A stretch of DNA of 63,884 nt, filler included, from Basidiobolus meristosporus CBS 931.73 (Eukaryota > Fungi > Basidiobolomycota): NCBI GenBank assembly GCA_002104905.1. It is 3 parts of 3 records of this genome, joined end to end, with 100 filler letters (N's around TTAATTAATTAA, not from the genome) between each part and the next. Parts side by side here need not be neighbours in the genome. Positions count along the whole stretch, not along the records: positions 1 to 29,303 come from MCFE01000870.1; 2 more parts are not named here. One strand, 5' to 3'. Numbering within the stretch: position 1 is the stretch's first letter; each line of letters opens with the position of its first letter. The notes beneath the pieces are model-generated. The model had not been told where the DNA came from and ran no database searches. It saw nothing but the letters and a program-made list of their open reading frames with translations. The position numbers and the translations under genes were made by a program. Positions 1-28,689 of this stretch are shown piece by piece.

Positions 1-384
1 TGGAATAGCTATCGTTAACAAAGCTACTGCCATGTCATGACAAACAATTATTAAATTTTGTACCTAAGTGTCCTCATATTAGGGGACACTCTTGCGATGA
101 AATAACAAGAATCCTGATATTGAGCGAAATTCCGAACTTGAATCTTTTGTTACTTTACCAGCATCACTACTGAAAGAAGGTACATTTGTATAATGATGCC
201 ATTCAGTTCCTGAACAGCAATGTCGTAAAAGGGTGCTCCAACTTATATTTATAACAGAAACTCTTGGTAATGTTAGTGGTTTGGTGAGCAGTTGGATTAT
301 ACAGTATTCCCTTGATAATTTGGCTAATACAAGGCAGGGTAGGAACGGACCTAGGTGCGGACCATAAAGCTGTTTAATCTGCTG

Positions 385-711
385 TAAAAATTCGGAATTC
401 CACCTAAATATTCACCTAACTTAGTCACTTAGATCATTACCTTCAAATCCTAGAGAATACTAACCAAATTCCTTGTCGGGATTTACTTAGAATATTTACC
501 CAGAACATGAAAATTAGATAAGTTGTCCAAACAGCACCAAACTTTGCACACATGTTCTTGGGACCTTCCTTAACCTATTCTACGTGTTTGTAATGCCAAG
601 ACCATGTAAAAGTATAAATACTACTTTTACATTCAATATATCATTAAGTGAAAACCACATAATCTACTTGTTCTCCCAATCACTTCCAATATATCCAAGA
701 CTCTTACAACA
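385..711 (+). mobile_element. Degenerate LTR (family ending ...CTCTTACAACA)
   Basis: TATAAATA about 100 bp before a CTCTTACAACA terminus. Reverse-complement relatives begin TGTTGTAAGAG at 3160, 23338 and ~24660, with further pieces at ~24110-24400 and ~25210-25540. Left boundary approximate. Confidence 0.6.
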
Positions 712-2005
712 TAATCATGATCTGTGCTTATCAGACCAAGGAATACATAAGCCAAAATAGGGCTATATACACTTTTGGCAAAATAAATGCTAATGGAGAC
801 TGGCTAGAACTAGTAGGGTTTTGGGGGAGAAGTACAGTAACATTACCAAGATAATGATAAAGATAGAGAAGCCCTGAAGCACAACTTGATCATTAAAATA
901 CATGCATGGGCCATTTGATCACAACTATTATCAATGAGCTCTAAGCAAATCAGTGGTAAGCTCCCAAGGAATGAACATTTGTGTTATATAAAAACTCAAT
1001 ATGCAATCAGCTACATGAAATTAGCAGGTGGTTCTGGATTGAATATCTTACACTCTGAGCTAGGCAACCAAGATCTGAAATAGGTAATCCAGGCTGCCAT
1101 GTGATCATATCAGTTTCTGTAGAGCATATACCACCAACTGCAAGACAATACTAATTTGCTTCAAAAAGTACTGAAATTGTGCTTGCTATGGGTGCTTGCT
1201 TGCAATACTACAATATTATGCTGGTATTTTACTGGGACCCTCAGTTGCTGTTGGACATTGATATTTCTAGAATCAGTGAGCTGACTGCTAGAATATCTTG
1301 AGTGATCATTGCCCAAGCATAGCACTCATGAGCATATATATTTACTTTTCATCAAGCAGCAGTTACTGTATGGAAAATATAATATTTGCTGGAAGTTTGC
1401 AGCTGATAGGTGAATTTACTTGAGTGGTCACATATTGTCAGGTAGCACAATAGAGGGGCAGGGTACTATGCCTGGACAAAGCTAGGCTATATAAGATGCA
1501 AACTCAAAGATTGAATAGCAAGTTATAGAGCACCATATGGTGCAATGGGCAAGATATTGTCATTTTAATTATACCTAGATGATTGCCTAACTTAGTCACC
1601 TTAGCCAAGCATACTTGACATGTTCTTATTGCCCAAACCATGTAGAAGTTCAAATATCTCTTTTTGCAAAATGAATCTTTTAGTGCAAACAGCATTGTCT
1701 ACCTGCTTTGGTATTGTTCTCAGGCATTTTCAAGGCTGTGACTACTAAGTACCACAAGAAAGGCATCCTGAGCTTTGTTGGCAGCATATAAGTTTATGGA
1801 AATCTTTGTATAGAGTATGCTTACCAAAATTATAATACTACAGATACAAAGTGTTTATCTTTTTAGCTGCATCAAGTGCTTCTCTCTGCACAAATGACAT
1901 TTGGTGATAATATGTTTAACAAATCACAATAAAGAGCAGGGTCAGAAGCTAATAGTTTGCATGCTGTATTATTTGAATAAGGAGCTACAACAGTTATATA
2001 GGTAC

Positions 2006-2682
2006 TGTTGTATCCAAGAGAAAAGTGTAATAAAACTCTTGAATGAGTTAACTGAACCTAAGTGACAACTAAGTGCAGAATCTTAGAATTGTCAAGAGTG
2101 CCAGAAATATTAGCAGAGTGGTTCTGGTTTAATATTGGTCTTATATATAGCTGAGTTGGGCTATAAAGGCAACAGAGTAGGTTTGCTATGCAGGCTAGGC
2201 TTGGTGTTCTTGAGAGTGCTAGATATGCTAGGCTTGGGTAGAAACTAGAATGGATATGTTGAAATCTTAATTTTGTTGAGACACACACTAAACCAAAAGG
2301 CTCAGTAAGCTTTATTTATATCTTTCTGATTGAGTTGCATTAGTAAGCACCAAGAGATTGGACAAATTGGAATCTGTTGGGGTGTTGATAGGTGCATAAG
2401 ATAAATGAAAAATTGCATCATTAATCAGCTGATGTCTTGGCAACTGCTAATTGGTTGGATAAATCTCAGATGACTAATCACTTGGAAAGGCTTAGCAGAT
2501 CAGTTGAGGATGTAATGACCACATGAAAATTGATCAGGTGTGACAGCTAAAAATAGATTATGAGAAGTGATAAAATAAACCATAACAGGGATTAGTTATG
2601 TTTGGGTTAGGGAAAATCAGTTAGGGTACTAGATTTTCTAACGGAGTGAAATTGGCCAAGTTTCAAGTGTTGATGCACAACA
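2006..2682 (-). mobile_element. Solo LTR of the chromovirus-type Gypsy family, with 5-bp TSD GGTAC
   Basis: Termini TGTTG...CAACA, flanked by GGTAC at 2001-2005 and 2683-2687. Collinear by eye with the LTR at 50109-50805, which abuts a chromodomain integrase. Confidence 0.9.
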
Positions 2683-3159: not shown

Positions 3160-3470
3160 TGTTGTAAGAGTTCTGGAGATATTTGAAGTGATTGGCAGAA
3201 TCAATAGAATATATGGTGTTCACTTAATTTATTGAGTATAAGAGCAGGATTGATACTTTTGCACAATCTTGGCAAGACAAATATATTGATTACAAATATA
3301 GAATAAATTTGGCTATCATTTACTGATTACCTGCACCAAGGGTTGCGACTTAACACTTGAAGCAAAAACACCAGCTGAATACCAGTAAAATACTATTGGA
3401 ATACCAGCTAAAAATCCAATGAATTCCAGCTTTGCAATTTTCCATAGGGTATTAGGACCTTGGGATTAAC
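3160..3470 (-). mobile_element. Degenerate LTR copy (CTCTTACAACA family, reverse orientation)
   Basis: Begins TGTTGTAAGAG and resembles the reverse complement of 385-711. Right boundary approximate. Confidence 0.5.
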
Positions 3471-10973: not shown

Positions 10974-13838
10974 ATGGAAGTGATGTCGCCATCTAGCATA
11001 CTCCCATCCAGGGTCTCAAGGAAAGTCCAACCTCAGAGCCCGATATCAAACGCACGCAAGAGCCTCTTCACGGGCACTTCATCCCCTGGCACACTAGTCG
11101 GTGGCAAAACACCGTATCATAACAGGCTCGAGAAGAAATTCAACAGCTACGACCCCAACAGGGAACCGGTCAAGACGTATCTACGCATCCGGCCGGGCCC
11201 CACGCGCAACCTACAAACAAGTCTGCCGTCAAGCTATTTGAACTTGGTCAGTGATAATGAGGTACTTATGGCCCCTCCGACAGAATCCAACGCTTACAAG
11301 GTTCGCTCCGGCATACAAGAACGGTTCAAATTCACCAAAGTGTTCAGTGAAGAAACCGAACAGCAAGATTTCTTCCAGGAAACTGCACGACCACTCATCG
11401 AGCAGGTGATCGAAGGGGAGAATGCGTTGATCTTTGCCTACGGTGTGTCAAATTCGGGTAAAACTTACACCATTCAGGGTTCCCGAGAGCATCCGGGGTT
11501 GCTACCCCGCAGTTTGGAGTTGATTTTGAACAGCATTCAGGAGAATCAAAGCAACGATCAGCTTCGACCAGTGAGATATTCCGAAGTCGAGAATTTCAAA
11601 AATCACCGGGACTTCAACGTGACGTATGATGAGTCCCTACACTCCTACGAGAAACCGGAGCAATCTCCCGACAAGATCGCCTGTGATCCAGACTACGAGT
11701 ACGCCGTCTGGGTTTCCTATGCCGAGATTTACAACGAGAAGGTGTATGACCTGTTGGATTCCTCCTCCCTTGCCGACACCAAACGGAGCTCCCTGACTCT
11801 GAAGAAAGACCGCAAAACCGGGTACAAGTACATCCATGGCCTGAGAGAATTCCGAGTGAACTCCGTTGAGGACGGCTACCAATTGCTCAACCAAGGGCAG
11901 AAGAACCGAACCGTTTTCTCAACTATGCTGAACGCAGTTTCTAGTCGTAGCCACAGTATATTCACCATCAAGTTAATCAGAGTTCCTAAGAACGCCATGA
12001 CTGAGGAGCTGAAGATCAAGTACTCCTCGGTTAGCCGGATCTCTTTGGTAGATTTGGCAGGTGCTGAGCGCAGTAAGCTGACCCAAAATACAGGTGAAAG
12101 ATTGAAGGAGGCGAACAACATCAACAAGTCTTTGATGGTGTTAGGCCAGTGTCTAGTCAGCTTGAGGCACAACCAGACCCGTGAACACAAGGAAGTGGTT
12201 CCTTTCCGTCAGTCCAAATTGACCGAAATGTTCCAGAGCTCGTTTACCGGGGAGGCTAAAGCGGTGATGCTGGTTAATGTCAATCCGTACGAGACGAGTT
12301 TCGCCGAAACAAGCCACGTTCTGAAATTCGCGGCTGTTGCAATGGATATCACCACGGTAAGAAGAACTGTGCAAAAAGTGAAGGTCACGAAATTGCTGGA
12401 GATGGAAGCACAACTTGCTACGCCCACTAAGCCTCCCAAGCGGCCAAGCTTTGACTCCGACTTCGTTTCAGAGGAGGATGAGTATGAGTCTGACGAGGAG
12501 ATGTACATCGCCGACATGGTCAAGAAGTATGAGGATATTCTATACGAGATTCGCGAGAAATGGTTGGATGCCGAGTCGAGGTGCGCCAATATGGAGACGA
12601 TAATCCGCGAGGAATTGACTAACGAATTCGCCTCCCAAGTCAAGCATCTAGAGAGTCTATTCAGCTTACGCTTGACCAATGAATCCGACATGAACGAATT
12701 CAAAACGGAAAGGAAAATCGACATTGTTAGTCGAAACACCATGTTCATGGTCCAACCATTGAACCAACTGGATTCGAATATTGGTAATGAGATTGAGCTT
12801 CAGAAGTCGCGAATCATTTCTTTGGAGCACAACATCCGTGAACTGGAGTTCGATTTAGCAGCGACGAGAGGGCTTGTTGCTGCTGAGAAGTCTCAAAAGC
12901 TGGCCCTCTACGACAAGTTGCAAACCGTAGAAGAATCTATGGCCTCCGAAATCCAGCGTTCCGTGGCAACAGCTTTGGAGAAGCAGGCGGAGGAGCAATC
13001 TTTGAAGTACTCCAAGCTACAAACTGCGTATGGATCGTTGCATAGCAACTACTCACAGATGGAAAAGTATCTCAAGGAGATGGTGGAGGAAAATCTGGAG
13101 TTGAAAAAAGAATTCGACAAAGACAAGGCGTATTTGCAGCATAAGAACTCCCGTTTACTAGAAATCGCATCGTTCTGCCAGAAAGAGAATGGCTTGCATG
13201 AGGAAGAGAAGGCCACTCAGGTGACACCCACAAAGCCCAAGCCAAACGCATTCATGCACACCACCCCCGAGTCTCAAATCTACAGTATCCCAGCCCCAAG
13301 CTCTACCGTATTGTCGAAGAGCGAGATTGCAAAATCTGGCTTCTTGAAGAAGTATCTCTGGGGCAAGAAGAAGCTGGCTTATAATTCATATGAAGCCATA
13401 TCAGTTGATGCAGAGACAGCAAACACTACCATTGTCAAAGGCCCTATCATCAAGTCACCGACTGGAGGTGTTCAGGTTGTGTTCAACGAGATAGAGACCC
13501 ATCCTACCGTTGAAATGGAAAACCCCATTCCGAGCCCAGCTATTCAAGCGCTTCGTGCCCAGCAAGAGAAGAAACCCTTGAGCCCGTTCATCAAGAAAGC
13601 CCGGGATTTATTCCGCAAAACTCCGGCCAAAAATGTTGTGACTACTGACGAGGACAATATCTTTGATGCTGGCAATCAAAGTGTCAAGAAGAAGACCAAG
13701 AAGCTGAGAGTCAAGAAAGCGGTGACTGAGCAGGACATCAGCAACAATGTACAATCTATCGAGAAAGATAGCCGGACTCCCATGAAATTCAGACTACGTC
13801 AAAGAAATGGCACCAAGCCTGATTATCAAGGCGCTTAG
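10974..13838 (+). CDS. Kinesin-6 family mitotic kinesin (KIF20/KIF23/Klp9-like), 954 aa, single exon
   Basis: N-terminal motor with P-loop GVSNSGKTYT, SSRSH, LVDLAGAER and VPFRQSKLT. Long insert after the P-loop helix (kinesin-6 loop L6), then a coiled coil and a basic tail. Subfamily assignment is inference. Confidence 0.9.
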   Translation: MEVMSPSSILPSRVSRKVQPQSPISNARKSLFTGTSSPGTLVGGKTPYHNRLEKKFNSYDPNREPVKTYLRIRPGPTRNLQTSLPSSYLNLVSDNEVLMAPPTESNAYKVRSGIQERFKFTKVFSEETEQQDFFQETARPLIEQVIEGENALIFAYGVSNSGKTYTIQGSREHPGLLPRSLELILNSIQENQSNDQLRPVRYSEVENFKNHRDFNVTYDESLHSYEKPEQSPDKIACDPDYEYAVWVSYAEIYNEKVYDLLDSSSLADTKRSSLTLKKDRKTGYKYIHGLREFRVNSVEDGYQLLNQGQKNRTVFSTMLNAVSSRSHSIFTIKLIRVPKNAMTEELKIKYSSVSRISLVDLAGAERSKLTQNTGERLKEANNINKSLMVLGQCLVSLRHNQTREHKEVVPFRQSKLTEMFQSSFTGEAKAVMLVNVNPYETSFAETSHVLKFAAVAMDITTVRRTVQKVKVTKLLEMEAQLATPTKPPKRPSFDSDFVSEEDEYESDEEMYIADMVKKYEDILYEIREKWLDAESRCANMETIIREELTNEFASQVKHLESLFSLRLTNESDMNEFKTERKIDIVSRNTMFMVQPLNQLDSNIGNEIELQKSRIISLEHNIRELEFDLAATRGLVAAEKSQKLALYDKLQTVEESMASEIQRSVATALEKQAEEQSLKYSKLQTAYGSLHSNYSQMEKYLKEMVEENLELKKEFDKDKAYLQHKNSRLLEIASFCQKENGLHEEEKATQVTPTKPKPNAFMHTTPESQIYSIPAPSSTVLSKSEIAKSGFLKKYLWGKKKLAYNSYEAISVDAETANTTIVKGPIIKSPTGGVQVVFNEIETHPTVEMENPIPSPAIQALRAQQEKKPLSPFIKKARDLFRKTPAKNVVTTDEDNIFDAGNQSVKKKTKKLRVKKAVTEQDISNNVQSIEKDSRTPMKFRLRQRNGTKPDYQGA

Positions 13839-14758: not shown

Positions 14759-14810
14759 TGTCAGTACTTCAGCCAAAACATTAACGAGACAGAATAGTCT
14801 GATTGAAAGG

Positions 14811-16547
14811 ATGAAGAAAGTGGAAGTTAACTCTGGCATGGATGATAAAGACATCATCTCAACCGAGCCTGCGGCTTATCCCGATACTGAAGACAGCAAT
14901 CTAAAGTGGTACCTGCGCAACCTCTGCACAAAGGATGGCTGGATCGGTGAATACAACATTGGGTTCCTTTGTCTGCCGAACTTGCCTGGATTTGCAAAGC
15001 AGCCACCCGCAAGGTTCATTGGAATCAAGGACCGCTTGCCGCTTGCCGTCGCGATCATCATGGGCTTCCAGCACTGCTTGGCCATGCTGGCTGGTGTGGT
15101 CACCCCTCCTATCATTCTCTCGGGCCCGGGGCCACAACACATGAATCTCAACACTGAATACCGTTCCTACCTCATCTCCGCATCACTCATCACCTGCGGC
15201 ATGTTGTCGATGATCCAGATGACGAGGTGGAGGATTCCTGGGACTCGCTACTACATGGGCACCGGCCTGATCACCGTGGTTGGGACTTCATTCACCATCA
15301 TGCCTGTTGCCGAGTCCTCGTTCGACTACATGTACCAGTCGGGGTACTGCCCAACAGTGAAGAATGCCAATGGGGACATCACTCAGTACCTCCCGTGCCC
15401 GGAGGCGTACGGAGCACTGCTCGGGACCACGATGGCCTGCTCTGTCCTCATGATCCTGATCTCGTTTGTGCCGGCAAAGGTTCTCCACAAACTGTTCCCA
15501 CCGCTTGTCACCGGCATCACTGTCACCCTGATCGGAGCCCATCTGGTTGGCTCGGGGCTGAAGAACTGGGGTGGAGGAAGTGGGCCTTGCATCAAGCTCC
15601 CCGAGTCTGGTAACTTTGCCCTCTGCCCGAACGTCAATGCCCCGAATGCCCTCCGCTGGGGCCACATCAAGTACATGGGACTTGGCTTTCTTGTGTTCAT
15701 CTCCATCATCATCTTTGACATCTTCGGCTCGCACTTCATGCGCTCGGCCGAGGTAGTGCTTGGGCTGATTGTGGGGCTGATCGTCTCCTGGACCACGGGG
15801 TATGTGGACACCAGTGTGATCAACGAGGCCCCCGTGGTGACCTTCGTGTGGGTCAAGACGTTCCCACTGAGCATCTACACCCCTGCGATCATCCCGATCC
15901 TGGTGATCTACATGCTGATTGCTGTCGAGTCGATCGGCACCATCACCGCTTGCTGTGATGTCTCGGGTGTGGAAGTCACTGGGCCGGTGTTTGAGACTCG
16001 GATCCAGGGCGGCGTGTTGGCCGATGGGATCAACAGCCTGCTCGCCGGAGCATTCACCAACCCGCCAATGTCCACCTTTGCTCAGAACAACGGGATTGTT
16101 GCACTGACCCGATGCGCCAACATCACCACTGGCTATGCCTGCTGCGTCTTCCTCATTGTCATGGGGGTCTTCTCGAAGCTAGCCTCGGTGTTCCTCGCCA
16201 TTCCCGAGTCGGTGCTGGGCGGAATGACCACATTCCTGTTTGCGAACGTGCTGGTGTCAGGCATTCGCATTCTCTCCTACCTCAAGTGGACCCGTCGCGA
16301 CCGCTTCATTGCTGCGGCCTCGATGACGCTCGGGATGGGCACCACCATCAAGGACGACTGGTTCTCGTATGCGCTTACCAACCTCAAGGGCACGAACACC
16401 GCAGTGAACGGGCTGATCATCTCTGCCGAGATGGTGGTGAACTCTGGCTTCACCATTGCGGCGATTGTCGCGATCATTCTGAACCTTGTGATGCCCAGGG
16501 AGATTGAGGACCTCGAAAACGAGGAGAATGGTCACCACCCAGTTTAG
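14811..16547 (+). CDS. uapA: NCS2/NAT xanthine-uric acid permease (UapA/UapC-like), copy 1, 578 aa, intronless
   Basis: TM1 QH motif (GFQHCLAM), NAT signature FAQNNGIVALTRCAN, IPESVLGG, RRDRFI; many hydrophobic segments. Orthology to uapA versus uapC is not resolvable. Confidence 0.92.
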   Translation: MKKVEVNSGMDDKDIISTEPAAYPDTEDSNLKWYLRNLCTKDGWIGEYNIGFLCLPNLPGFAKQPPARFIGIKDRLPLAVAIIMGFQHCLAMLAGVVTPPIILSGPGPQHMNLNTEYRSYLISASLITCGMLSMIQMTRWRIPGTRYYMGTGLITVVGTSFTIMPVAESSFDYMYQSGYCPTVKNANGDITQYLPCPEAYGALLGTTMACSVLMILISFVPAKVLHKLFPPLVTGITVTLIGAHLVGSGLKNWGGGSGPCIKLPESGNFALCPNVNAPNALRWGHIKYMGLGFLVFISIIIFDIFGSHFMRSAEVVLGLIVGLIVSWTTGYVDTSVINEAPVVTFVWVKTFPLSIYTPAIIPILVIYMLIAVESIGTITACCDVSGVEVTGPVFETRIQGGVLADGINSLLAGAFTNPPMSTFAQNNGIVALTRCANITTGYACCVFLIVMGVFSKLASVFLAIPESVLGGMTTFLFANVLVSGIRILSYLKWTRRDRFIAAASMTLGMGTTIKDDWFSYALTNLKGTNTAVNGLIISAEMVVNSGFTIAAIVAIILNLVMPREIEDLENEENGHHPV

Positions 16548-17398
16548 ATAAACCTAAGATTATCAAAACCATGGACCGAAAAAAGGTCGGATATAACATA
16601 AGGATCAATTAGTGCACTGAATTGCTTTGGAACTCAATCTTTATATGGGGATAGTGATTCCATTTGGTTGTAATAAACCAGCTTAAGTTTCAAATCGGTT
16701 TCCAGTTTGAATATCATCGGGAAGAGCGAATATTTAGTTGGCATTTACTTATCCCACTAGGAAATATAATCCAACTTTGATTTTAGTGCTCAACCTTCCC
16801 GAGTATTGCTTTTACATGATCTCCGAATTTATCTTATATAATATATACCATGTGGTCATCTGTATATTCTGCAAAGTGCCATTGTCAGACCCTCCATGAA
16901 TTTAGTTCTCGGGTGATGGATTAGCCTTGCAAGTTTTTGGGAACTGCCCAATATCTATTTATCATAGACCAATTCCCAAATTCTTCTGTTAACCTTAACC
17001 ATCTTACTGATAGATGCGATTCGAATTTTACGTCCACCTAACAGACCAGTGCTCAAGGGAGTATGCCAATTGTCGCTGTTGTATAAATCTTTACAACTAA
17101 AATTTGACTGGTATGTTTGGGGTATAAACCTGGAGCCAGGCGAAGAATCGTAATAAGAACATTTTGAGACTAGATTTGGTACGGAAAGTTGAACTCCTGT
17201 ATTAATATATCTTAGTGAACTCAAAATGTAAACTCGGTTTATTTTGAATACGAGAGGATCAAAAATCCTCTCAATGTACACGTCCCATAACATTTACGTT
17301 TGGCTGCGGCAACTAGACGTGAGGTTCAATCAAATTAGACTCAGCTTAGGCGTAGTAAGGTACATGTATAGATTGACTACAAATTTCTACCCAGCAGC

Positions 17399-19135
17399 TT
17401 AAGCTGGATGATGATCATTCTCCTCATTCTCAAGATCTTCAATCTCCCTAGGCATCACAAGGTTCAGAATGATCGCGACAATCGCCGCAATGGTGAAGCC
17501 AGAGTTCACCACCATCTCGGCAGAGATGATCAGCCCGTTCACTGCGGTGTTCGTGCCCTTGAGGTTGGTAAGCGCATACGAGAACCAGTCGTCCTTGATG
17601 GTGGTGCCCATCCCGAGCGTCATCGAGGCCGCAGCAATGAAGCGGTCGCGACGGGTCCACTTGAGGTAGGAGAGAATGCGAATGCCTGACACCAGCACGT
17701 TCGCAAACAGGAATGTGGTCATTCCGCCCAGCACCGACTCGGGAATGGCGAGGAACACCGAGGCTAGCTTCGAGAAGACCCCCATGACAATGAGGAAGAC
17801 GCAGCAGGCATAGCCAGTGGTGATGTTGGCGCATCGGGTCAGTGCAACAATCCCGTTGTTCTGAGCAAAGGTGGACATTGGCGGGTTGGTGAATGCTCCG
17901 GCGAGCAGGCTGTTGATCCCATCGGCCAACACGCCGCCCTGGATCCGAGTCTCAAACACCGGCCCAGTGACTTCCACACCCGAGACATCACAGCAAGCGG
18001 TGATGGTGCCGATCGACTCGACAGCAATCAGCATGTAGATCACCAGGATCGGGATGATCGCAGGGGTGTAGATGCTCAGTGGGAACGTCTTGACCCACAC
18101 GAAGGTCACCACGGGGGCCTCGTTGATCACACTGGTGTCCACATACCCCGTGGTCCAGGAGACGATCAGCCCCACAATCAGCCCAAGCACTACCTCGGCC
18201 GAGCGCATGAAGTGCGAGCCGAAGATATCAAAGATGATGATGGAGATGAACACAAGAAAGCCAAGTCCCATGTACTTGATGTGGCCCCAACGGAGGGCAT
18301 TCGGGGCATTGACGTTCGGGCAGAGGGCAAAGTTACCAGACTCGGGGAGCTTGATGCAAGGCCCACTTCCTCCACCCCAGTTCTTCAGCCCCGAGCCAAC
18401 CAGATGGGCTCCGATCAGGGTGACAGTGATGCCGGTGACAAGCGGTGGGAACAGTTTGTGGAGAACCTTTGCCGGCACAAACGAGATCAGGATCATGAGG
18501 ACAGAGCAGGCCATCGTGGTCCCGAGCAGTGCTCCGTACGCCTCCGGGCACGGGAGGTACTGAGTGATGTCCCCATTGGCATTCTTCACTGTTGGGCAGT
18601 ACCCCGACTGGTACATGTAGTCGAACGAGGACTCGGCAACAGGCATGATGGTGAATGAAGTCCCAACCACGGTGATCAGGCCGGTGCCCATGTAGTAGCG
18701 AGTCCCAGGAATCCTCCACCTCGTCATCTGGATCATCGACAACATGCCGCAGGTGATGAGTGATGCGGAGATGAGGTAGGAACGGTATTCAGTGTTGAGA
18801 TTCATGTGCTGTGGCCCCGGGCCCGAGAGAATGATAGGAGGGGTGACCACACCAGCCAGCATGGCCAAGCAGTGCTGGAAGCCCATGATGATCGCGACGG
18901 CAAGCGGCAAGCGGTCCTTGATTCCAATGAACCTTGCGGGTGGCTGCTTTGCAAATCCAGGCAAGTTCGGCAGACAAAGGAACCCAATGTTGTATTCACC
19001 GATCCAGCCATCCTTTGTGCAGAGGTTGCGCAGGTACCACTTTAGATTGCTGTCTTCAGTATCGGGATAAGCTGCAGGCTCGGTTGAGATGATGTCTTTA
19101 TCATCCATGCCAGAGTTAATTTCCACTTTCTTCAT
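17399..19135 (-). CDS. uapA: NCS2/NAT xanthine-uric acid permease (UapA/UapC-like), copy 2, 578 aa, intronless
   Basis: Reverse-complement near-identical copy of 14811-16547. Protein differs at position 6 (I vs V) and in the last residues (DHHPA vs GHHPV). Confidence 0.92.
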   Translation of the reverse strand: MKKVEINSGMDDKDIISTEPAAYPDTEDSNLKWYLRNLCTKDGWIGEYNIGFLCLPNLPGFAKQPPARFIGIKDRLPLAVAIIMGFQHCLAMLAGVVTPPIILSGPGPQHMNLNTEYRSYLISASLITCGMLSMIQMTRWRIPGTRYYMGTGLITVVGTSFTIMPVAESSFDYMYQSGYCPTVKNANGDITQYLPCPEAYGALLGTTMACSVLMILISFVPAKVLHKLFPPLVTGITVTLIGAHLVGSGLKNWGGGSGPCIKLPESGNFALCPNVNAPNALRWGHIKYMGLGFLVFISIIIFDIFGSHFMRSAEVVLGLIVGLIVSWTTGYVDTSVINEAPVVTFVWVKTFPLSIYTPAIIPILVIYMLIAVESIGTITACCDVSGVEVTGPVFETRIQGGVLADGINSLLAGAFTNPPMSTFAQNNGIVALTRCANITTGYACCVFLIVMGVFSKLASVFLAIPESVLGGMTTFLFANVLVSGIRILSYLKWTRRDRFIAAASMTLGMGTTIKDDWFSYALTNLKGTNTAVNGLIISAEMVVNSGFTIAAIVAIILNLVMPREIEDLENEENDHHPA

Positions 19136-19785
19136 TCTTGGCCTACTTGGAATTCAACAGTTGGTCAGATATTTTTTATTTGGTTCGAGTCTCGGTTTGC
19201 TCTTTTTATTGCCAAAATCCGAGAAATAGGAAGATCCAGAAGCAAGCATATTTCCAACACTAGCTGAAATTGTGGCAACTGCAATATACGGCTTTACCCA
19301 TAACTAATTTGCGTACAACTACTCACTTGTGCCATGTTTCTCCACGTTCACCACGGATATTGGTAATTTATCAGGATTTATGCTAAATTCACAATGATAC
19401 CCAAACATTTAATTACCTCGATCTACGGTTTAGATGCAGAAACTCATGAGTCCGTTAGTTACGAATACTTTAAAATGTTCACCGCTTTGGTGAGGTACCT
19501 TTAAATTACCATTTCAGAAAAATACAAGTTCACCCTCTTGAATTTCCTTTTATTCAGTCACAAACAATCGTACAAAATCACCCTTTACAGGGTAAGCAAT
19601 GCAATTTGAGTCAAATAGTACTGTATTTCACCACAAACACATTCTTGGATGTATCTGGTTGTCGGTAACTTGTGGAGAAACGAAATAGAACGACGCTAAT
19701 TGAACTGGTCTGTTATATGCAATTTTTTAGGTGTGGTATTTCTGGCGAGTAACTGGGACAAGGGTGTCCACTCCACTCTGCGAAT

Positions 19786-20175
19786 GTCATGGGGGTGTTC
19801 TCGAAGCTAGCCTCGGTGTTCCTCGCCATTCCCGAGTCGGTGCTGGGCGGAATGACCACATTCCTGTTTGCGAACGTGCTGGTGTCAGACATTCGCATTC
19901 TCTCCTACCTCAAGTGGACCCGTCGTGACCGCTTCGTTGCTGCGGCCTCGATGACGCTCGGGATGGGCACCACCATCAAGGACGACTGGTTCTCGTATGC
20001 GCTTACCAACCTCAAGGGCACGAACACCGCAGTGAACGGGCTGATCATCTCTGCCGAGATGGTGGTGAACTCTGGCTTCACCATTGCGGCGATTGTCGCG
20101 ATCATTCTGAACCTTGTGATGCCCAAGGAGATTGAGGACCTCGAGAAAGAGCTGAACGATCACCATCCAGCCTAG
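19786..20175 (+). pseudogene. 5'-truncated third permease copy (128-codon ORF from ATG 19789, last TM helices only)
   Basis: Homology to copy 1 starts abruptly at ~19786 (TGTCATGGGG). Substitutions G>D (VSDIRIL) and I>V; distinct tail MPKEIEDLEKELNDHHPA*. Confidence 0.85.
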
Positions 20176-20785: not shown

Positions 20786-22059
20786 CTAAGCTGCCTTCAC
20801 TTCCTCGACCACTCTTGCCAGCTTCTCCTTCACCGACTCGCTGACATCTACCTTCTTCTCACCTTTCACCAGATCGTCTTCCTCACTGCTGTCGACCTTT
20901 CTTGGGGTCACGACGCCGTCGGGATCCAGGTTCTGAGTGGATTCTTGATCGGAATCGGCCTCACCACTCGCTTTCGTATCCATCGCTTTCAGGAAAGTGG
21001 GCAGGTTGATTTTCTTTCCATTCGGGTACACCAGCTCTTGGGTGAACACATTACGCAACTTTCCGATGATCAAAGAGCTAAGCTTGGGCAGATCCTTGAC
21101 TTTGGTGTGGTGTCCGAGAAGGGATTTGATGTTGATCTGAAGGTCGAAGTCCGGTTGGATCGACACAAACAGGTAAGTGCTCTTGTCGGAATTTTCGGTG
21201 AACTCTATGTACAGCTACGAGAAATCAGGTCAGCTCTTCACTGCTGGAACTGGGATCCGCCGGATGACTACTTACAGTTCCGTTGAACTTGGCTACGGAC
21301 GCCACCAAGGAGACTGGCAATGCGGCTAGATATGCTTTAGGCCAGTTGACTAGGATCTGGGTGTCAATGCCGAGTGATATCTGATCATCGAATTCGAACG
21401 AGATCTCGGCACGCATCTTCGAACCGTCTTCCGAGGGTCGAATCCTTGCATCTTTGAACAAGGGGTATTCCGTTCCCAAGGATAATTCGGTCAGCGTGAT
21501 ATCTCCCTACAAGACGCGAACCGTTTAATGTTGAGCGTATCAGCCGAAGGGGGCGGTTGGCACCTCTTACCATGAAGTTCGGCTTGACACCGCTGTTTAG
21601 TGTTTCGTCAAATACCCGGATGAGTCTGCTGTTGGCCTGAGCCTCCCGACGTAGTTTGCTCAGGGTTTGGGCGAGCAACACGTTCAACCAGTCACACGAT
21701 TCCGCTGGGTGTTCCGTCGCGTTGTATGCGGTTTTGGCTAGGATCTCAGCGTCCAAAAAGGTTCTGGAATCTCTGTGAAGACGCTAGAAGATTGGTTCAA
21801 ATATTAAGTAGCTGTTCGGGAAACTCCGCCTTCCTGGCCAACGAACCTTCTCCTTCTCTGTCGCCTCCTTGTTGCGTTTCAGCAACTCGGACTTCCGGGA
21901 GATTCGGTCCCCATGAACGGGGTCTTCTAACAGTAGATATTTGACACAAACAACCACCAGTACCAAAATACTCAGTTGGCCAAGTAGGAGTCCCTTGGTA
22001 AAACTCCAGGTGGCCTGGGACACAGCTTGGCTTAGGTAATCACCCCATTCGGAGGACAT
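20786..22059 (-). CDS. MMM1: ERMES subunit Mmm1 (SMP-domain ER-mitochondria tether); multi-exon
   Basis: N-terminal TM WSFTKGLLLGQLSILVLVVVCVKYLL; HPAESCDWLNVLLAQ; SMP strands LGTEYPLFKDARI, DDQISLGIDTQILVNWPK, LPVSLVASV; HTKVKDLPKLSSLI. GT-AG introns separate the pieces. Confidence 0.92.
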
Positions 22060-23599
22060 TGTGAAGGAACGAGTTGTGCAGGTGTTGGTTTGAGTTGAGG
22101 TATGGCTGGAGGTAAATGTGCTGGCGTGAAGCTCAATTTGGTGGTAAAGTGGGAAGGAAAATTTTTAGATACTCGTTCGTGAGATGGATTTGCTATGCTG
22201 ACTATGTCATCCGAATCGATTTCAGCCGATGCTCACCCGCTTTCCTAATTTGGGAATCCTACCGATGCGCACGCAAGCCAGCCTCCTTGCCTGCTGTTCC
22301 AGTGAACTGCGCGGTCCCCGCTTCGATAACCACGCGGGCAGTGATTCGCTCAAGAAACGTCGTTTCCTAAGATGCCAGACGACAGATGCCCCACCAGATT
22401 GGACATGGGTGGTAGGCGCTTCAATCTGGCCGAAGTGGAGCCAGCGTTTGTCTAATCTACAAAGAATACGGGATGTCAGTTACTTCAAATGCATATCGGC
22501 TGTCAGTGTCAAGAGCTGAAGAAGCACCACGCAATAAATCAGTTTATGAATTACAATTAGCGTTGCCTTAATTTCCGTGTGAAGCTTGAGGACCAATAAT
22601 CCTCTATACACGTGACCATACCGCCATCAAATGTTTCTTGATCAGGTCGATTTGGGTACAGGAAGTGGAGCTGCAGGTGGTCTACTACATTAAAAAGGTA
22701 GAGTGGAGAAAATAGATGGTGATATCAAGCAAAAAGATACAGGGAAACTAGGCTGATTTGTGGTTGCTTGTATGATAGCTTCAATGCTTAGGCTGATGGA
22801 CTGGCAATTGTTGACCAATATCCTCAACCATACATGGCCTGCTGAACTTCTGAGGTTGTTGTGGTATCAGTGGTCTCTATTTCTTTCTCATTTCAAGAAC
22901 CATTATGGTGATGGCTGTTAGTTATCTCAGCTGTGCCATGGCACCTACACCTTGCAATGCTTCTGCTGGCAAACATTCCACATGGTGTATGCAAAGTCCT
23001 TTTTAAAAAGTTCCAACTTGATTTTCTTGTTGTATACATGATCTGGATGTTTTTAGTGCACACACTGAATGATAATTCTCCTGGCTTTAAGCCAAAATTT
23101 ATACCTGCTGGATATTGGAAGTGGAACTTGCTATCATTGCTCAAGTGATGGGTAGTGAGGTACTTCTTGTAACTACACCTACTTGCTGACTTGACCTGGT
23201 TACTAAGACCCAAGTCCACAAATCTTAGAGATTTCTGCCCAAATTCCTTAATGAGACATGCCAGAGAACATTTTATGTTTGGATACCTGTTGCTTTATTA
23301 AAACTACTCTTGATTGTTCAAACAGCCCTAAGCTTTGTGTTGTAAGAGTTTCAGAGATATTGAGAATGATATGGAGAACTAGTAGTTCATGAGTTTCACT
23401 TGGTTATTTAATGAATGTAAAAGCAGTATTTAATCTTTTACATAATTGTGGCAAGACAATCACATGGAATATGCTGACCAGCTTCTAAGAGTATGTGTGC
23501 AAGGTTTGACACTGCTTGGACAACTTTGAGATATTTCATATTTGGAGTGAATGATATTTTGGTGAGCATATTCCAAGTAAGTCCAAACAGGGAAGCATA

Positions 23600-24110
23600 G
23601 GCTTTTGGAAGGCTCTAAGCTCTATTGATTTGGTTCAGTTCTGACCAAGTTGAGGTTTGTCTCCAATGGAGTAGCTACTTGCTTACAGTCTTCTATGTGG
23701 TACTTCTTATGTATTGCTAGAATATACCAGAACTAACTGAATGTGATAGTCTAGATATTCTTGTTGATGGAAAACTGTATCCATCAGTATTACATGAGCT
23801 CTTCAAGCTTGGATAATTTGAGCTCCTTAGATAGGCTGCATATAGTCTCTTCCAATGCTCTTTGGCTAATGGTGGCTATAATGAAATTATCTACATATGC
23901 AGCTGATAGAACAGAATTTGCTATATTTGGCTTATAGTAGACAATATAGTCAGTAATACTTCTCTGAATACTTGAGGACTTGAGGTTGGAGTTCATCTTG
24001 CAATCCCAGGCTTGCACGGACTGATCATGCTGAGATTTTCTATTTCACCTCAATATTTATTGAAGGACTTCGATATTGAAAGAGACTGGGGGTACAAGTA
24101 TATTTGAAGT
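23600..24110 (-). mobile_element. Ty1/Copia reverse-transcriptase remnant
   Basis: QAWDCKMNSNLKSSSIQRSITDYIVYY...AAYVDNFIIA matches the Copia RT QAxRxW...YVDD region. Interrupted by stops and flanked by LTR fragments. Confidence 0.7.
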
Positions 24111-25829
24111 TTCCACTTGATGATTAGTATAATGCCAAAGTGCTACATTGACTTTTAGATGGTCTTGGCAAATCAAACATATAGAATATGCTTAGGAAGG
24201 TTCCAAAGACATTTATTTCAAGTGTGGGGCTGCTTGGACAACTTTGAGAAATTTCACCATTAGGTACCTGATATGATAATTAATATATCATGAGTGAATG
24301 ACTACAAGGATTTTGCTTGGAATTCTCTATGTTCTGTAGGTAATAATCCAAGTGACTAAGTTAGGTGAGTATTTAGCTGCAATTGCAAAATTTGCAACAA
24401 TTTTCATCCAACCTAGTCATATAGCTCATAGTGGACCACCTGGAGAATTCCAACCAAGCTCCTTGTTGGGATTTGCTTTTAAGGCTATCACCAAAAGCAT
24501 CAGATGGCTAGAGCATACAATATGTTAAGGTTGTCCATACAGCCTCCAGCTGTGCACACATGCTAGTGGAAACTTCCTAATCCTAATATGTGTTTTCATT
24601 GCCAAGACCATGTAAAGCTTAAATGCCACATTTACATCTTGTAAATCAATAAGTGAAGGCTGTTGTAAGAGTTTTGAGCACTTTGTGTCATGATCACATG
24701 ACATCCTTGACCTTTCATGATTTGACCAAATCAGGTTGGTGAAGAAATACCAGTTCCCTCTAGAAAGCTCTACCACATTCTAGCAACTTGTGGAAAGCTC
24801 CAAGTCAACATTACATAATGGAAAATTCTATGGAAGCTTCCCTTTGAAATTTATGTAGCTCAATACCATATATGGTTACTGCATGTCACATGACCTATTC
24901 ACATGATCAGCTGACTCTGGGCATATCCCCATGTGATGTTCTAATCTGTTGTTTAGTATACTTCTATCTTGGCACACTTATTGTTCCTCACCCTAGAACC
25001 CTGTCAGTATTGACCAATATCTCTTGGCATCCATATTGCCAAAAAGTATATATAGTTCTATCCTCCCTTATGTTTTCCTTAGTGTGATAAACACAGGTCT
25101 TGAATAAACAGCCTTGCCTTGGAGATCCACCTTGCCTTGTTGATCCACCCCTAAGTCCTTTCTTGGTCCTGCCTTGCCTAGCTCTACTCTCCTGCCTTGT
25201 GTCTATTCATAACACTTTAGAAGTGACAGAGAGAACAAGTAGGTTGTGTGATTTCACTTGATAATTTATTGCCTATATAAATATATCTCTACTTACAATA
25301 GGCTTTGCATGACAAACATGCAAAATATGTTCAGGAAGGTCCAAAGAGCATATGTGCAAGATATGGGGTTGTTTGGACAACTCTGCAATATTTCATGTCT
25401 TGGGTACACAATGTTTTGGTAAAAATAATCAAAACATATCCCAACAAGGGGTTTGAGTAGAATTCTGTGAGATTCACGGGCAACAATCTGGCTGAGTAAG
25501 GTAGGTGAGTATTTAGATGGAATTGCATGCATTATAACACTCCCACTCTGTAAAATATTCATATTGACTAGTCCTTATTGTGATCTGAGATATTTAAAGT
25601 TGTCTCTAGCTAGTGGTCTGGGAAATATGTCTGCAATAATTTCATATGCAGCTACATTAACTAAGCTACTTATAATAGCTTCACATATGAAAAAAAGACT
25701 TTCATGCATGTGCATAGACTTGGCATCAATACTTGAATTTATGCCAAACTGTATATATCCTTGATTATCTGGAGATAATATAGTAGGAGCACTTTGCAAA
25801 AAGCCTCAGCCTTAAAAAAGCTTTCTTAG

Positions 25830-27346: not shown

Positions 27347-28689
27347 TAGGTAGGTTGGTGTTGTAATCTTGCTAATACTGATAATCTCCTTTCAATTAGT
27401 GGATAATGGCTTAAATTGTCTGATAAATTTTGTTGGGTCCTAGGGAGTTTGTATGAGCCCCCCATGCCGGGTGCCAAATATGTGGTGGTGCATAGTACAA
27501 GGGCAAGACATGTCCAACACTTCTCAAGTGTTTTGTGTATGGGGTGCTCACTGGGTGCAATAACCTCTGGCAAAAGTGTGCTAGGAGTACTTGGGTTCTG
27601 TTTCTAATATAATGTGATGGGGAAGAAAGCCACATACTTGCCAAGGGAAAAACTATTGAGCTACAATCCCCAACTTGGTTGGTGTCTCAACAAAAGTATG
27701 TGCTGGGTTCAGTGTCCTTTGAGATGCAAATGAACTAAAGCTTCCAAAGTCAAAACAACTGTACACTCCTCCAGCAGGGACTTGATAAGAATGCAGCTGT
27801 GGTTCATAGTTACAAAGACAGAAAATTATCTTTGCCTGTGCAAGAACAAGCTTAGGAAAAAATCAAATATAATAAAAGATACCTATTCTAAGTATTCGTC
27901 ACAACTAGTGCCTCCAAGGTCAGTTGGCTGTCAGAGTGGTTTCCTAGGAGTATCCTGTGGTTTGGAATTAGAAGTTCCGGTAGCAGTAGGTAGCACTGAT
28001 AACACTAATCAACAAGTTGGTATATTGATAAAAGGGATGATGTTTTATTGTTGGGGGATTGCCTTCCCTATATACTTCTCTCACTGGCTTAGTGATTACT
28101 AATCATGCTGTTCTGGAAGGTTCTGGATATCAATAGAACTCTGAATGACATCAGAATAGGCCAAGAATTTTTAAGTAGATGCTGGAAGGTTCCAAGAGGT
28201 ACAGCACATCCATCCAATTCAGGGATCAGTATTCTAAAACCTGTGTGACATTGGGATACAATATATGGAATGAGAATGGTAGAGATAGTAACACAACTTG
28301 ATCATGTTTTACAGGTCTTAGTGCAGGCACTTGCCTGATATGGAAGTACTTACACCTAATAACCTTACATCAAGTGAGAGATAACTTGTACAATAAATAA
28401 TCAGGTCTCATACTCAACTGGCTTATGCAATACTACTGATCAGATAAGACAAATGGGATAAAATTCAAATAAGTGTAGCAGAGAAATAGGGAAGTAAACA
28501 ATATGAGAATGGCCACATCTGTCAGTGGGTGTCAGTGTGACCCCATTACAGCCCTTACACCCCTATTTTCTGACACATTCTTTACCACATCAGCCCTCCC
28601 AATGATATATATAAATTTGGATTCAGTCATGTGGAGAAAAGGAAATATATTTGATTCAATAATCATAAATCTTTACCACCTCCTTACCT

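Follow-up and report, generated by a model that had tools for sequence, protein, structure and literature searches.

Two inverted-repeat permease gene clusters of Basidiobolus meristosporus with coding bodies probably homogenised by ectopic gene conversion

On scaffold MCFE01000870.1 (29.3 kb) of Basidiobolus meristosporus, an old cluster of paralogous permease genes very probably has had its coding bodies kept near-identical by repeated ectopic gene conversion. The original prediction had proposed, for two of these genes, that old paralogues are homogenised by conversion across an inverted repeat. This proposal is strongly supported by the diverged tails that the copies retain, by a second homogenised locus in the same genome, and by the clustering of the copies by locus.

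Permease copies and their diverged tails

The window (the whole stretch of DNA analysed, 63,884 nucleotides) contains two full-length permease genes, copy A (14811..16547, + strand) and copy B (17399..19135, - strand), each encoding 578 amino acids. They had been described as two convergent intronless coding sequences of 1737 nt facing each other across an 851-bp spacer, and this was borne out by the coordinates of the ORFs and of the inverted repeat, whose arms (14807-16546 and 17400-19139) are 1740 nt each and 99% complementary. Upstream of the cluster lies an MKLP1/KIF23-like kinesin gene (10974..13838, + strand; Pfam PF00225, E=6e-95), which served as the synteny anchor on the 5' side, and the downstream neighbour is an MMM1-domain gene (20786..22059, - strand; JGI model; PF10296). 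A third permease copy, C (19785..20175, + strand; PF00860, E=7e-9), was recognised by its similarity to A and B. It is truncated to codons 450-578, its first 1346 nt having been lost. Across 338 nt it is 98.8% identical to A and B, and it ends in a diverged tail of its own (77-81% identical). The piece was also scanned in full for Rfam families and tRNAs, with no matches.

The ORF of copy A matches PF00860 (Xan_ur_permease) with E=6.9e-64 over residues 81-512 and profile positions 3-384 of 389, and the UapA structure 5i6c_A with E=6.4e-167 over query residues 28-568. The NAT signature motif, defined as [Q/E/P]-N-x-G-x-x-x-x-T-[R/K/G], is present in A as QNNGIVALTR, aligned to QNNGVIALTR of UapA; the signature region TFAQNNG..ALTRCAN and the QH motif are conserved. 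Judged from these similarities, A and B probably encode a UapA-like uric acid/xanthine:H+ symporter of the NCS2/NAT family, the substrate being that predicted for a protein of this type. UapA of Aspergillus nidulans, a uric acid-xanthine/H+ symporter with the paralogue UapC, resembles A in domain, in signature and in near full-length similarity, and the closest fungal homologues outside Basidiobolus are at most 56% identical. The two species differ in copy number: A. nidulans has two copies, UapA and UapC, whereas B. meristosporus has at least 11 full-length permeases of this family.

In total, 16 sites distinguish A from B, all of them transitions, 13 of which fall at third codon positions. 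Only five are found in the homogenised tract (CDS nt 1-1685; 14811..16495 on the + strand in A), at nt 16, 63, 327, 846 and 909, and these are the same five transitions that had been noted earlier for the first ~1680 nt. The remaining 11 all lie within the last 52 nt (nt 1686-1737), which form an apparently unconverted tail in A (16496..16547, + strand), diverged from the tails of B and C, and in B (17399..17450, - strand), with 11 transitions relative to A. At the protein level, B differs from A at three residues (V6I, G574D and V578A).

Outside the coding sequences the similarity vanishes. The spacer between A and B (16548..17398; 851 bp; GC 0.37) is unique, contains both 3' flanks, and has no more inverted symmetry than shuffled sequence. 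The region upstream of B, which is also the B-C spacer (19136..19784), is unrelated to the region upstream of A, the alignment of the two being within the shuffle range. When the flanks of A, B and C on the 5' and 3' sides and the two halves of the spacer were aligned locally, the scores did not exceed those of shuffled sequence, in agreement with the upstream sequences and 3' flanks having been described as unrelated. The identity had also been said to stop exactly at the coding boundaries. This holds at the 5' end, where the upstream edge of A/B identity is within ~4 nt of the ATG, and fails at the 3' end, where the tract halts 52 nt inside the CDS.

Compared pairwise, the three tails (A, B and C) are homologous and 77-81% identical (78.8% for A and B, 80.8% for A and C), as against 98.8-100% for the bodies. 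A breakpoint between A and B was placed near nt 1697 with a maximum chi-square of 257.7, a value matched in none of 5000 permutations. Third codon positions differ between A and B at 4 of 561 sites in the body (3 of 535 within nt 79-1685) and at 9 of 18 in the tail (Fisher p = 1.7e-12), and the GC content at third positions (GC3) of the tail is 0.29 in B vs 0.65 in A. Given that the tails are homologous and diverged while the bodies are near-identical, an old paralogue evidently stood at each site, and its body was overwritten later. RIP-like mutation was considered as a source of the all-transition pattern and was rejected, as the tail changes are mostly in twofold-degenerate codons, in which a silent change can only be a transition, and have no consistent dinucleotide context.

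A second cluster and the wider family

A sister locus was found in the same genome on the 104-kb scaffold MCFE01000280.1, where permeases E (+), F (-) and G (+; L006:9896-11634) come after a kinesin paralogue that is 75% identical to the kinesin of the window. The layout of a kinesin gene and then permeases in the order +, -, + is common to both loci, and the full-length G occupies the position that corresponds to truncated C. Within each locus the bodies are nearly the same, at 99.5-100% identity among E, F and G and 99.8-100% between A and B, whereas identity across the two loci is 79-81%. In the gene tree, the groups (A,B) and (E,F,G) were both recovered with 100/100 support; their stems measure 0.30-0.33, and no tip exceeds 0.002. 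At third positions the A/B tail is as diverged (8/17) as the two loci are from each other, represented by A vs E (246/535), from which it follows that the copies are old and have been homogenised within each locus.

The regions that were spared differ by locus, being the 3' tail at the A/B locus and the 5' head at the E/F/G locus, where the first 78 nt are just 42-63% identical, which puts the 5' boundary of the identity 78 nt into the coding sequence. A and B, whose identity begins within ~4 nt of the ATG, have no diverged head. This observation runs against the conversion reading: for a process that depends on homology, it is surprising that A and B lack a diverged head when E, F and G have such strongly diverged ones.

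The residues EIEDLE and HHP occur in the tails of A, B and C and are missing in other family members, which implies that, once the two loci had separated, these tails either underwent homogenisation of their own or arose from a common source. No signal of positional orthology was found for the tails in the pairings A-E, B-F and C-G, because the tails of E, F and G have themselves been homogenised. Among the heads, those of A, of E and of the permease on the B. ranarum contig L007 are mutually closest (64-68%), although that of paralogue D is equally close; as a signal of positional orthology this similarity is only suggestive. The two loci also differ between their arms. E and F are separated by a PRP38 gene, of which a tblastx search found no trace in the spacer of the window or in B. 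ranarum L007. The F-G and B-C spacers are unrelated.

In B. ranarum, contig L007 carries the C-terminal part of the kinesin orthologue upstream of one permease and stops 2.9 kb past it; contig L005, which has the kinesin, measures only 6.8 kb. Among other old paralogues of B. meristosporus itself, such as D (76.6% identical), homology is likewise confined to the CDS. Among 13 full-length family copies examined, B. ranarum genes included, 11 are uninterrupted single ORFs. The two exceptions, G and Bran_L002, are broken by frameshifts only (in G, an apparent 1-nt deletion), apart from one in-frame stop that is also present in Bran_L002.

Gene conversion and the alternatives to it

On the best-supported reading, the locus is an old cluster of three paralogous permease genes in + - + order after a kinesin gene, in which repeated non-reciprocal recombination between the copies has very probably held the coding body nearly identical. 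Since A and B are inverted, unequal crossing-over could not have homogenised them, and we infer conversion as the form that this recombination took. Conversion tracts would be limited to the stretch in which homology survives, the non-coding flanks having presumably diverged past recognition long ago. The last 52 nt, being poorly constrained, may have escaped conversion and so retained their old divergence; truncated copy C still matches A and B in the part that remains.

A recent duplication of A, arising independently at each locus to give rise to B and C, with diverged tails and heads imported later by small conversion tracts from distant family members, would also account for body identities of 99.7-100%. 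The full-length copies, at least 11 in number, would provide potential donors, and the tails of A, B and C share residues that are missing in other family members. However, 12 other family members were retrieved, and not one has the tail of B or of C. Although the A, B and C tails are closer to one another than to any other tail, they are saturated at twofold-degenerate third positions. The same + - + triplication beside a kinesin paralogue would have to have arisen twice, and both breakpoints would have to coincide with CDS ends, whereas true recent duplicates carry their flanks, as seen for L009/L010, a recent duplication or haplotig in the assembly that is 99.3% identical over 14.7 kb with flanks included. 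We consider a recent duplication improbable.

Copying through RNA is less probable still. B could be a retrocopy, or the copies could have been repaired from a cDNA template, as the original prediction had suggested for the homogenisation. Either would limit identity to the transcribed coding part, and the intronless genes and an identity that begins within ~4 nt of the ATG are in keeping with this. Against it, the identity stops 52 nt before the stop codon and not at a polyadenylation site, the A/B/C locus shows no common UTR, poly(A) tract, target-site duplication or flanking direct repeats, and the 5' boundary at the sister locus lies inside the CDS. Furthermore, all family members examined are intronless, including those of B. 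ranarum; the intronless state of B is thus uninformative, as no intron loss marks it. The cDNA-templated part of the earlier proposal thus found no support. Even more doubtful is an artefact of assembly or polishing, in which one gene, or two more divergent genes, had been rendered as a near-identical inverted pair. The scaffold is short, and near-duplicate scaffolds such as L009/L010 do occur in the assembly, but the arms enclose a unique spacer, have different flanks, and differ by third-position-rich transitions rather than by indels. The same architecture was found independently on the 104-kb scaffold, and a sharp mosaic with in-frame, homologous, diverged tails would not be expected of an artefact. 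A SMRTbell-type palindrome artefact was rejected in view of the unique spacer and the different flanks.

Regulation, base composition and significance

The unrelated DNA upstream of A and B would agree with a separate, putative promoter for each copy. The inverted arms are long and near-perfect, each of 1740 nt at 99% complementarity, and an 851-nt loop lies between them. It is conceivable, though we regard it as unlikely, that the pair is maintained because read-through would give a 1.7-kb fold-back dsRNA tuning the dosage of the whole family of 11 or more copies via RNAi; what conversion preserves would then include a regulatory hairpin in addition to the two coding genes.

A milder alternative to the hairpin reading concerns base composition. 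GC3 is 0.77-0.79 in both clusters, and 0.48, 0.53, 0.62, 0.65 and 0.735 (copy H) in the singletons, a small sample of seven loci in which the two clusters rank highest; GC1 and GC2 are unchanged. Raised GC3 has been reported for converting gene pairs (PMC2720389). The pattern hints at GC-biased conversion, although selection on codon usage could act likewise, and strong GC bias of conversion in this early-diverging fungus may have driven the clustered copies to their present GC3.

Long-lived concerted evolution by ectopic gene conversion is known for the mammalian BMP8A/B (an inverted pair), DDX19A/B and TUBG1/2 genes (PMC2720389). As in those pairs, the paralogues described herein are closer to each other than to their positional homologues, form mosaics of homogenised and divergent segments and are stable in copy number; they may also share the raised GC3 of the converted parts. 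Unlike those pairs, they are intronless fungal transporter genes lying 0.65-0.85 kb apart, with three copies of which one is truncated, and two paralogous loci have evolved in parallel within one genome with differing tract boundaries. The arms of sex-chromosome palindromes also undergo gene conversion (PMC3403216), and the likeness extends to inverted arms, a unique spacer and an identity of ~99.7% produced by intrachromosomal conversion. Those palindrome arms measure tens of kb to Mb and include non-coding DNA, whereas the identity here is restricted to ~1.69 kb of coding sequence, everything else having diverged.

The locus adds one more instance of a process already described; as concerted evolution it is clear-cut but ordinary. 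It is at the same time an unusually clean natural one, with two + - + triples, each homogenised internally, in one genome. A literature search found no paper on nuclear gene conversion in Zoopagomycota, and both loci could serve to measure the limits of conversion tracts and GC bias in this group. B. meristosporus is a fungus of vertebrate guts (PMC3281927), and its large expansion of UapA-like permeases may reflect the use of uric acid as a nitrogen source. Gene trees of the permease family will falsely indicate recent lineage-specific duplications.

A convergent permease pair with clustered differences

An ORF scan located two 578-codon permease genes facing each other in the window, A (14811-16547, + strand) and B (17399-19135, - strand), and together they make an inverted repeat with 1740-nt arms, 99% complementary, around an 851-bp spacer, which bears out the facing pair of the original prediction. 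The encoded protein carries a Xan_ur_permease domain (PF00860, E=6.9e-64) and its residues 28-568 match the solved structure of UapA (5i6c), the uric acid-xanthine permease of Aspergillus nidulans, with E=6.4e-167; the NAT signature region is conserved. An exact match places the protein on MCFE01000870.1 (29,303 bp) of Basidiobolus meristosporus CBS 931.73 (GCA_002104905.1). Its closest relatives are other Basidiobolus proteins (85-90% identity); outside the genus, fungal proteins do not exceed 56%.

Comparison of A with B gave 16 differences, every one a transition. The five transitions previously counted in the body of the CDS (nt 1-1685) were recovered at nt 16, 63, 327, 846, and 909, and the other 11 lie in the tail (nt 1686-1737). 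The maximum chi-square, with its breakpoint at about nt 1697, was attained in 0 of 5000 permutations. Differing third positions were found in 4 of 561 body codons and 9 of 18 tail codons (Fisher p = 1.7e-12), and the clustering of differences is far beyond chance. Alignment of the copies with 200-nt flanks placed the start of identity no more than about 4 nt from the ATG and showed the DNA upstream and downstream to be unrelated; Smith-Waterman scores for the 5' flanks, the two spacer halves, and the 3' flanks were inside the range of shuffled controls, in agreement with the flanks having been called unrelated. Identity had been predicted to halt at the coding boundaries, which held at the 5' end but not at the 3' end, where the near-identical tract ends 52 nt inside the CDS. 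A separate promoter for each copy would fit the unrelated upstream DNA.

A fragment not mentioned in the original prediction, copy C, was identified by sequence comparison at 19785-20175 (+ strand) and corresponds to codons 450-578. Over 338 nt its identity to A and B is 98.8%; the last 52 nt are only 80.8% identical to A's and 76.9% to B's, and the sequence downstream of it bears no relation to the 3' flanks of A and B.

The sister locus and the age of the copies

A search with the kinesin gene neighbouring A (10974-13838, + strand) revealed a sister locus in the same genome, on MCFE01000280.1, where a 75% identical kinesin paralogue is followed by two P5CR genes, permease E (+), PRP38, and permeases F (-) and G (+), which repeats the strand order (+ - +) of A, B, and C. 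Body identity among E, F, and G is 99.5-100%, against only 79-81% with A, B, and C, and mutual identity in the initial 78 nt of E, F, and G is just 42-63%. Maximum-likelihood analysis of the body grouped (A,B) and (E,F,G), each at 100/100 support; their stems measure 0.33 and 0.30 substitutions per site, and no tip exceeds 0.002.

The A, B, and C tails align in frame as clear homologues, with about 20% of sites differing, nearly all silently. Third positions of A and B differ at 8 of 17 sites in the tail and 3 of 535 in the body (nt 79-1685); the tail proportion equals that between A and E (246/535). Given these diverged homologous tails, each of the three sites must originally have been occupied by an old paralogue, the body of which has since been overwritten; homologous but saturated ends cannot come from a fresh duplication. 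The common + - + architecture suggests a triplication that occurred before the loci separated, or is no younger than that event, and at that age clustering by locus on long stems would be the signature of concerted evolution. Collectively, the saturated tails, the sister triple, and the tree uphold the earlier proposal of old paralogues homogenised by conversion, and it is very probable that the copies are old and were homogenised within each locus. Unequal crossing-over cannot homogenise inverted copies. Since A/B and E/F are inverted, gene conversion would be left as the homogeniser, a mechanism that we infer from the sequence pattern and that rests on recombination genetics. The suggestion that this conversion was cDNA-templated found no support: the tract stops short of the stop codon without UTR or poly(A), its 5' limit is internal to the CDS at the sister locus, and the whole family is intronless.

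Several other features were seen around the loci. The tandem P5CR (pyrroline-5-carboxylate reductase) pair between kinesin and E (L004:13696-14576 and 15275-16155) is 91.9% identical and hence not homogenised as the permeases are; the window locus has no P5CR gene between kinesin and A. If the proposed fold-back dsRNA formed at the sister locus, its loop would contain a whole PRP38 gene. The window kinesin has an open frame of 954 codons and its B. ranarum orthologue 960 aa, so the deposited 592-aa B. meristosporus model looks truncated. A dispersed repeat family, probably a transposable-element remnant, flanks the cluster (window 380-714, 1567-1646, 3160-3228, and 23335-25527; copies about 70-84% identical, both orientations) and recurs downstream of G (L006:13497-15328). 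Matches of 86% join window 27481-28550 to L006:18649-19719 and window 2303-2682 to L006:21256-21634; the former, about 7 kb downstream of the third permease in both loci, in the same orientation and without a long ORF, is either conserved non-coding synteny or a repeat.

Limits of the proposed conversion tracts

Conversion would act only within the CDS because the flanks of old copies have decayed and conversion needs homology. The match of copy D (scaffold 172), 76.6% identical to A, is likewise confined to the CDS. By contrast, L009:1-14747 and L010:4372-19136 (MCFE01000182.1 and MCFE01000608.1), which would be a haplotig pair or a segmental duplication of very recent date, share 99.3% identity through 14.7 kb of both genes and flanks. 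At the sister locus, 5 of 15 variable sites lie within the last 16 nt, consistent with a pile-up of differences near tract edges as an edge effect.

Three observations count against this account or stay unexplained by it. The 5' limit of A/B identity is at the start codon, although the E, F, and G heads are very diverged: F starts MSEAKNEF, and B has A's MKKVE head. Several family members have in common a short conserved motif surrounding the start, AAG-N-ATGAAGAAAG, which might anchor the tract. In addition, EIEDLE and HHP residues are common to the A, B, and C tails and occur in no other family member, which suggests that the tails still had common sequence after the loci separated and then long escaped conversion. 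Third, in B. ranarum the syntenic contig (L007) has P5CR and a single + strand permease along with the C-terminus of the kinesin; only 2.9 kb of sequence follows this permease, with no second copy within that span.

Base composition and family expansion

Body GC3 is 0.77 in the window copies (A, B, and C) and 0.79 in the sister copies (E, F, and G); in singletons of the same genome it is 0.48 (D), 0.53 (D2), 0.62 (J), 0.65 (I/I2), and 0.735 (H), and in two B. ranarum genes 0.54 and 0.44. GC1 and GC2 are equal across all copies. Elevated GC3 is known to accompany gene conversion (PMC2720389). As a sign of conversion the raised GC3 is no more than suggestive, with two clusters set against five singleton loci and H close; codon-usage selection is also possible.

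The UapA-like family is much expanded in B. meristosporus, with 11 full-length copies (A, B, D, D2, E, F, G, H, I, I2, and J; from L001, L006, L008-L012, and the window) and fragment C on 8 scaffolds, all intronless; B. ranarum has at least 4 members. Only G (L006:9896-11634) has a frameshift, a 1-nt deletion in a CCC run near L006:10324, which may be a genuine pseudogenising mutation or may stem from a homopolymer error in long reads; the deposited model (536 aa) bridges it with an intron. A B. ranarum permease (L002:7783-9514, JASJQH010000107.1) whose frame is shifted close to codon 123 and also broken by an in-frame stop reflects either a pseudogene or assembly errors, and adjoins a purine nucleoside phosphorylase-type gene (PF01048). 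Singleton H (L008:1-9117) is directly downstream of a very large NRPS gene (>3244 aa). The expansion may be linked to the use of uric acid for nitrogen in dung and the guts of vertebrates.

Our literature search for nuclear gene conversion in Basidiobolus found none; papers with both terms concerned minor introns and Conidiobolus mitochondrial codon usage. The concerted process is already well known, inverted pairs included (PMC2720389; see also PMC3924832 and PMC3403216). The A/B locus would be a very clean new example of a well-known process.
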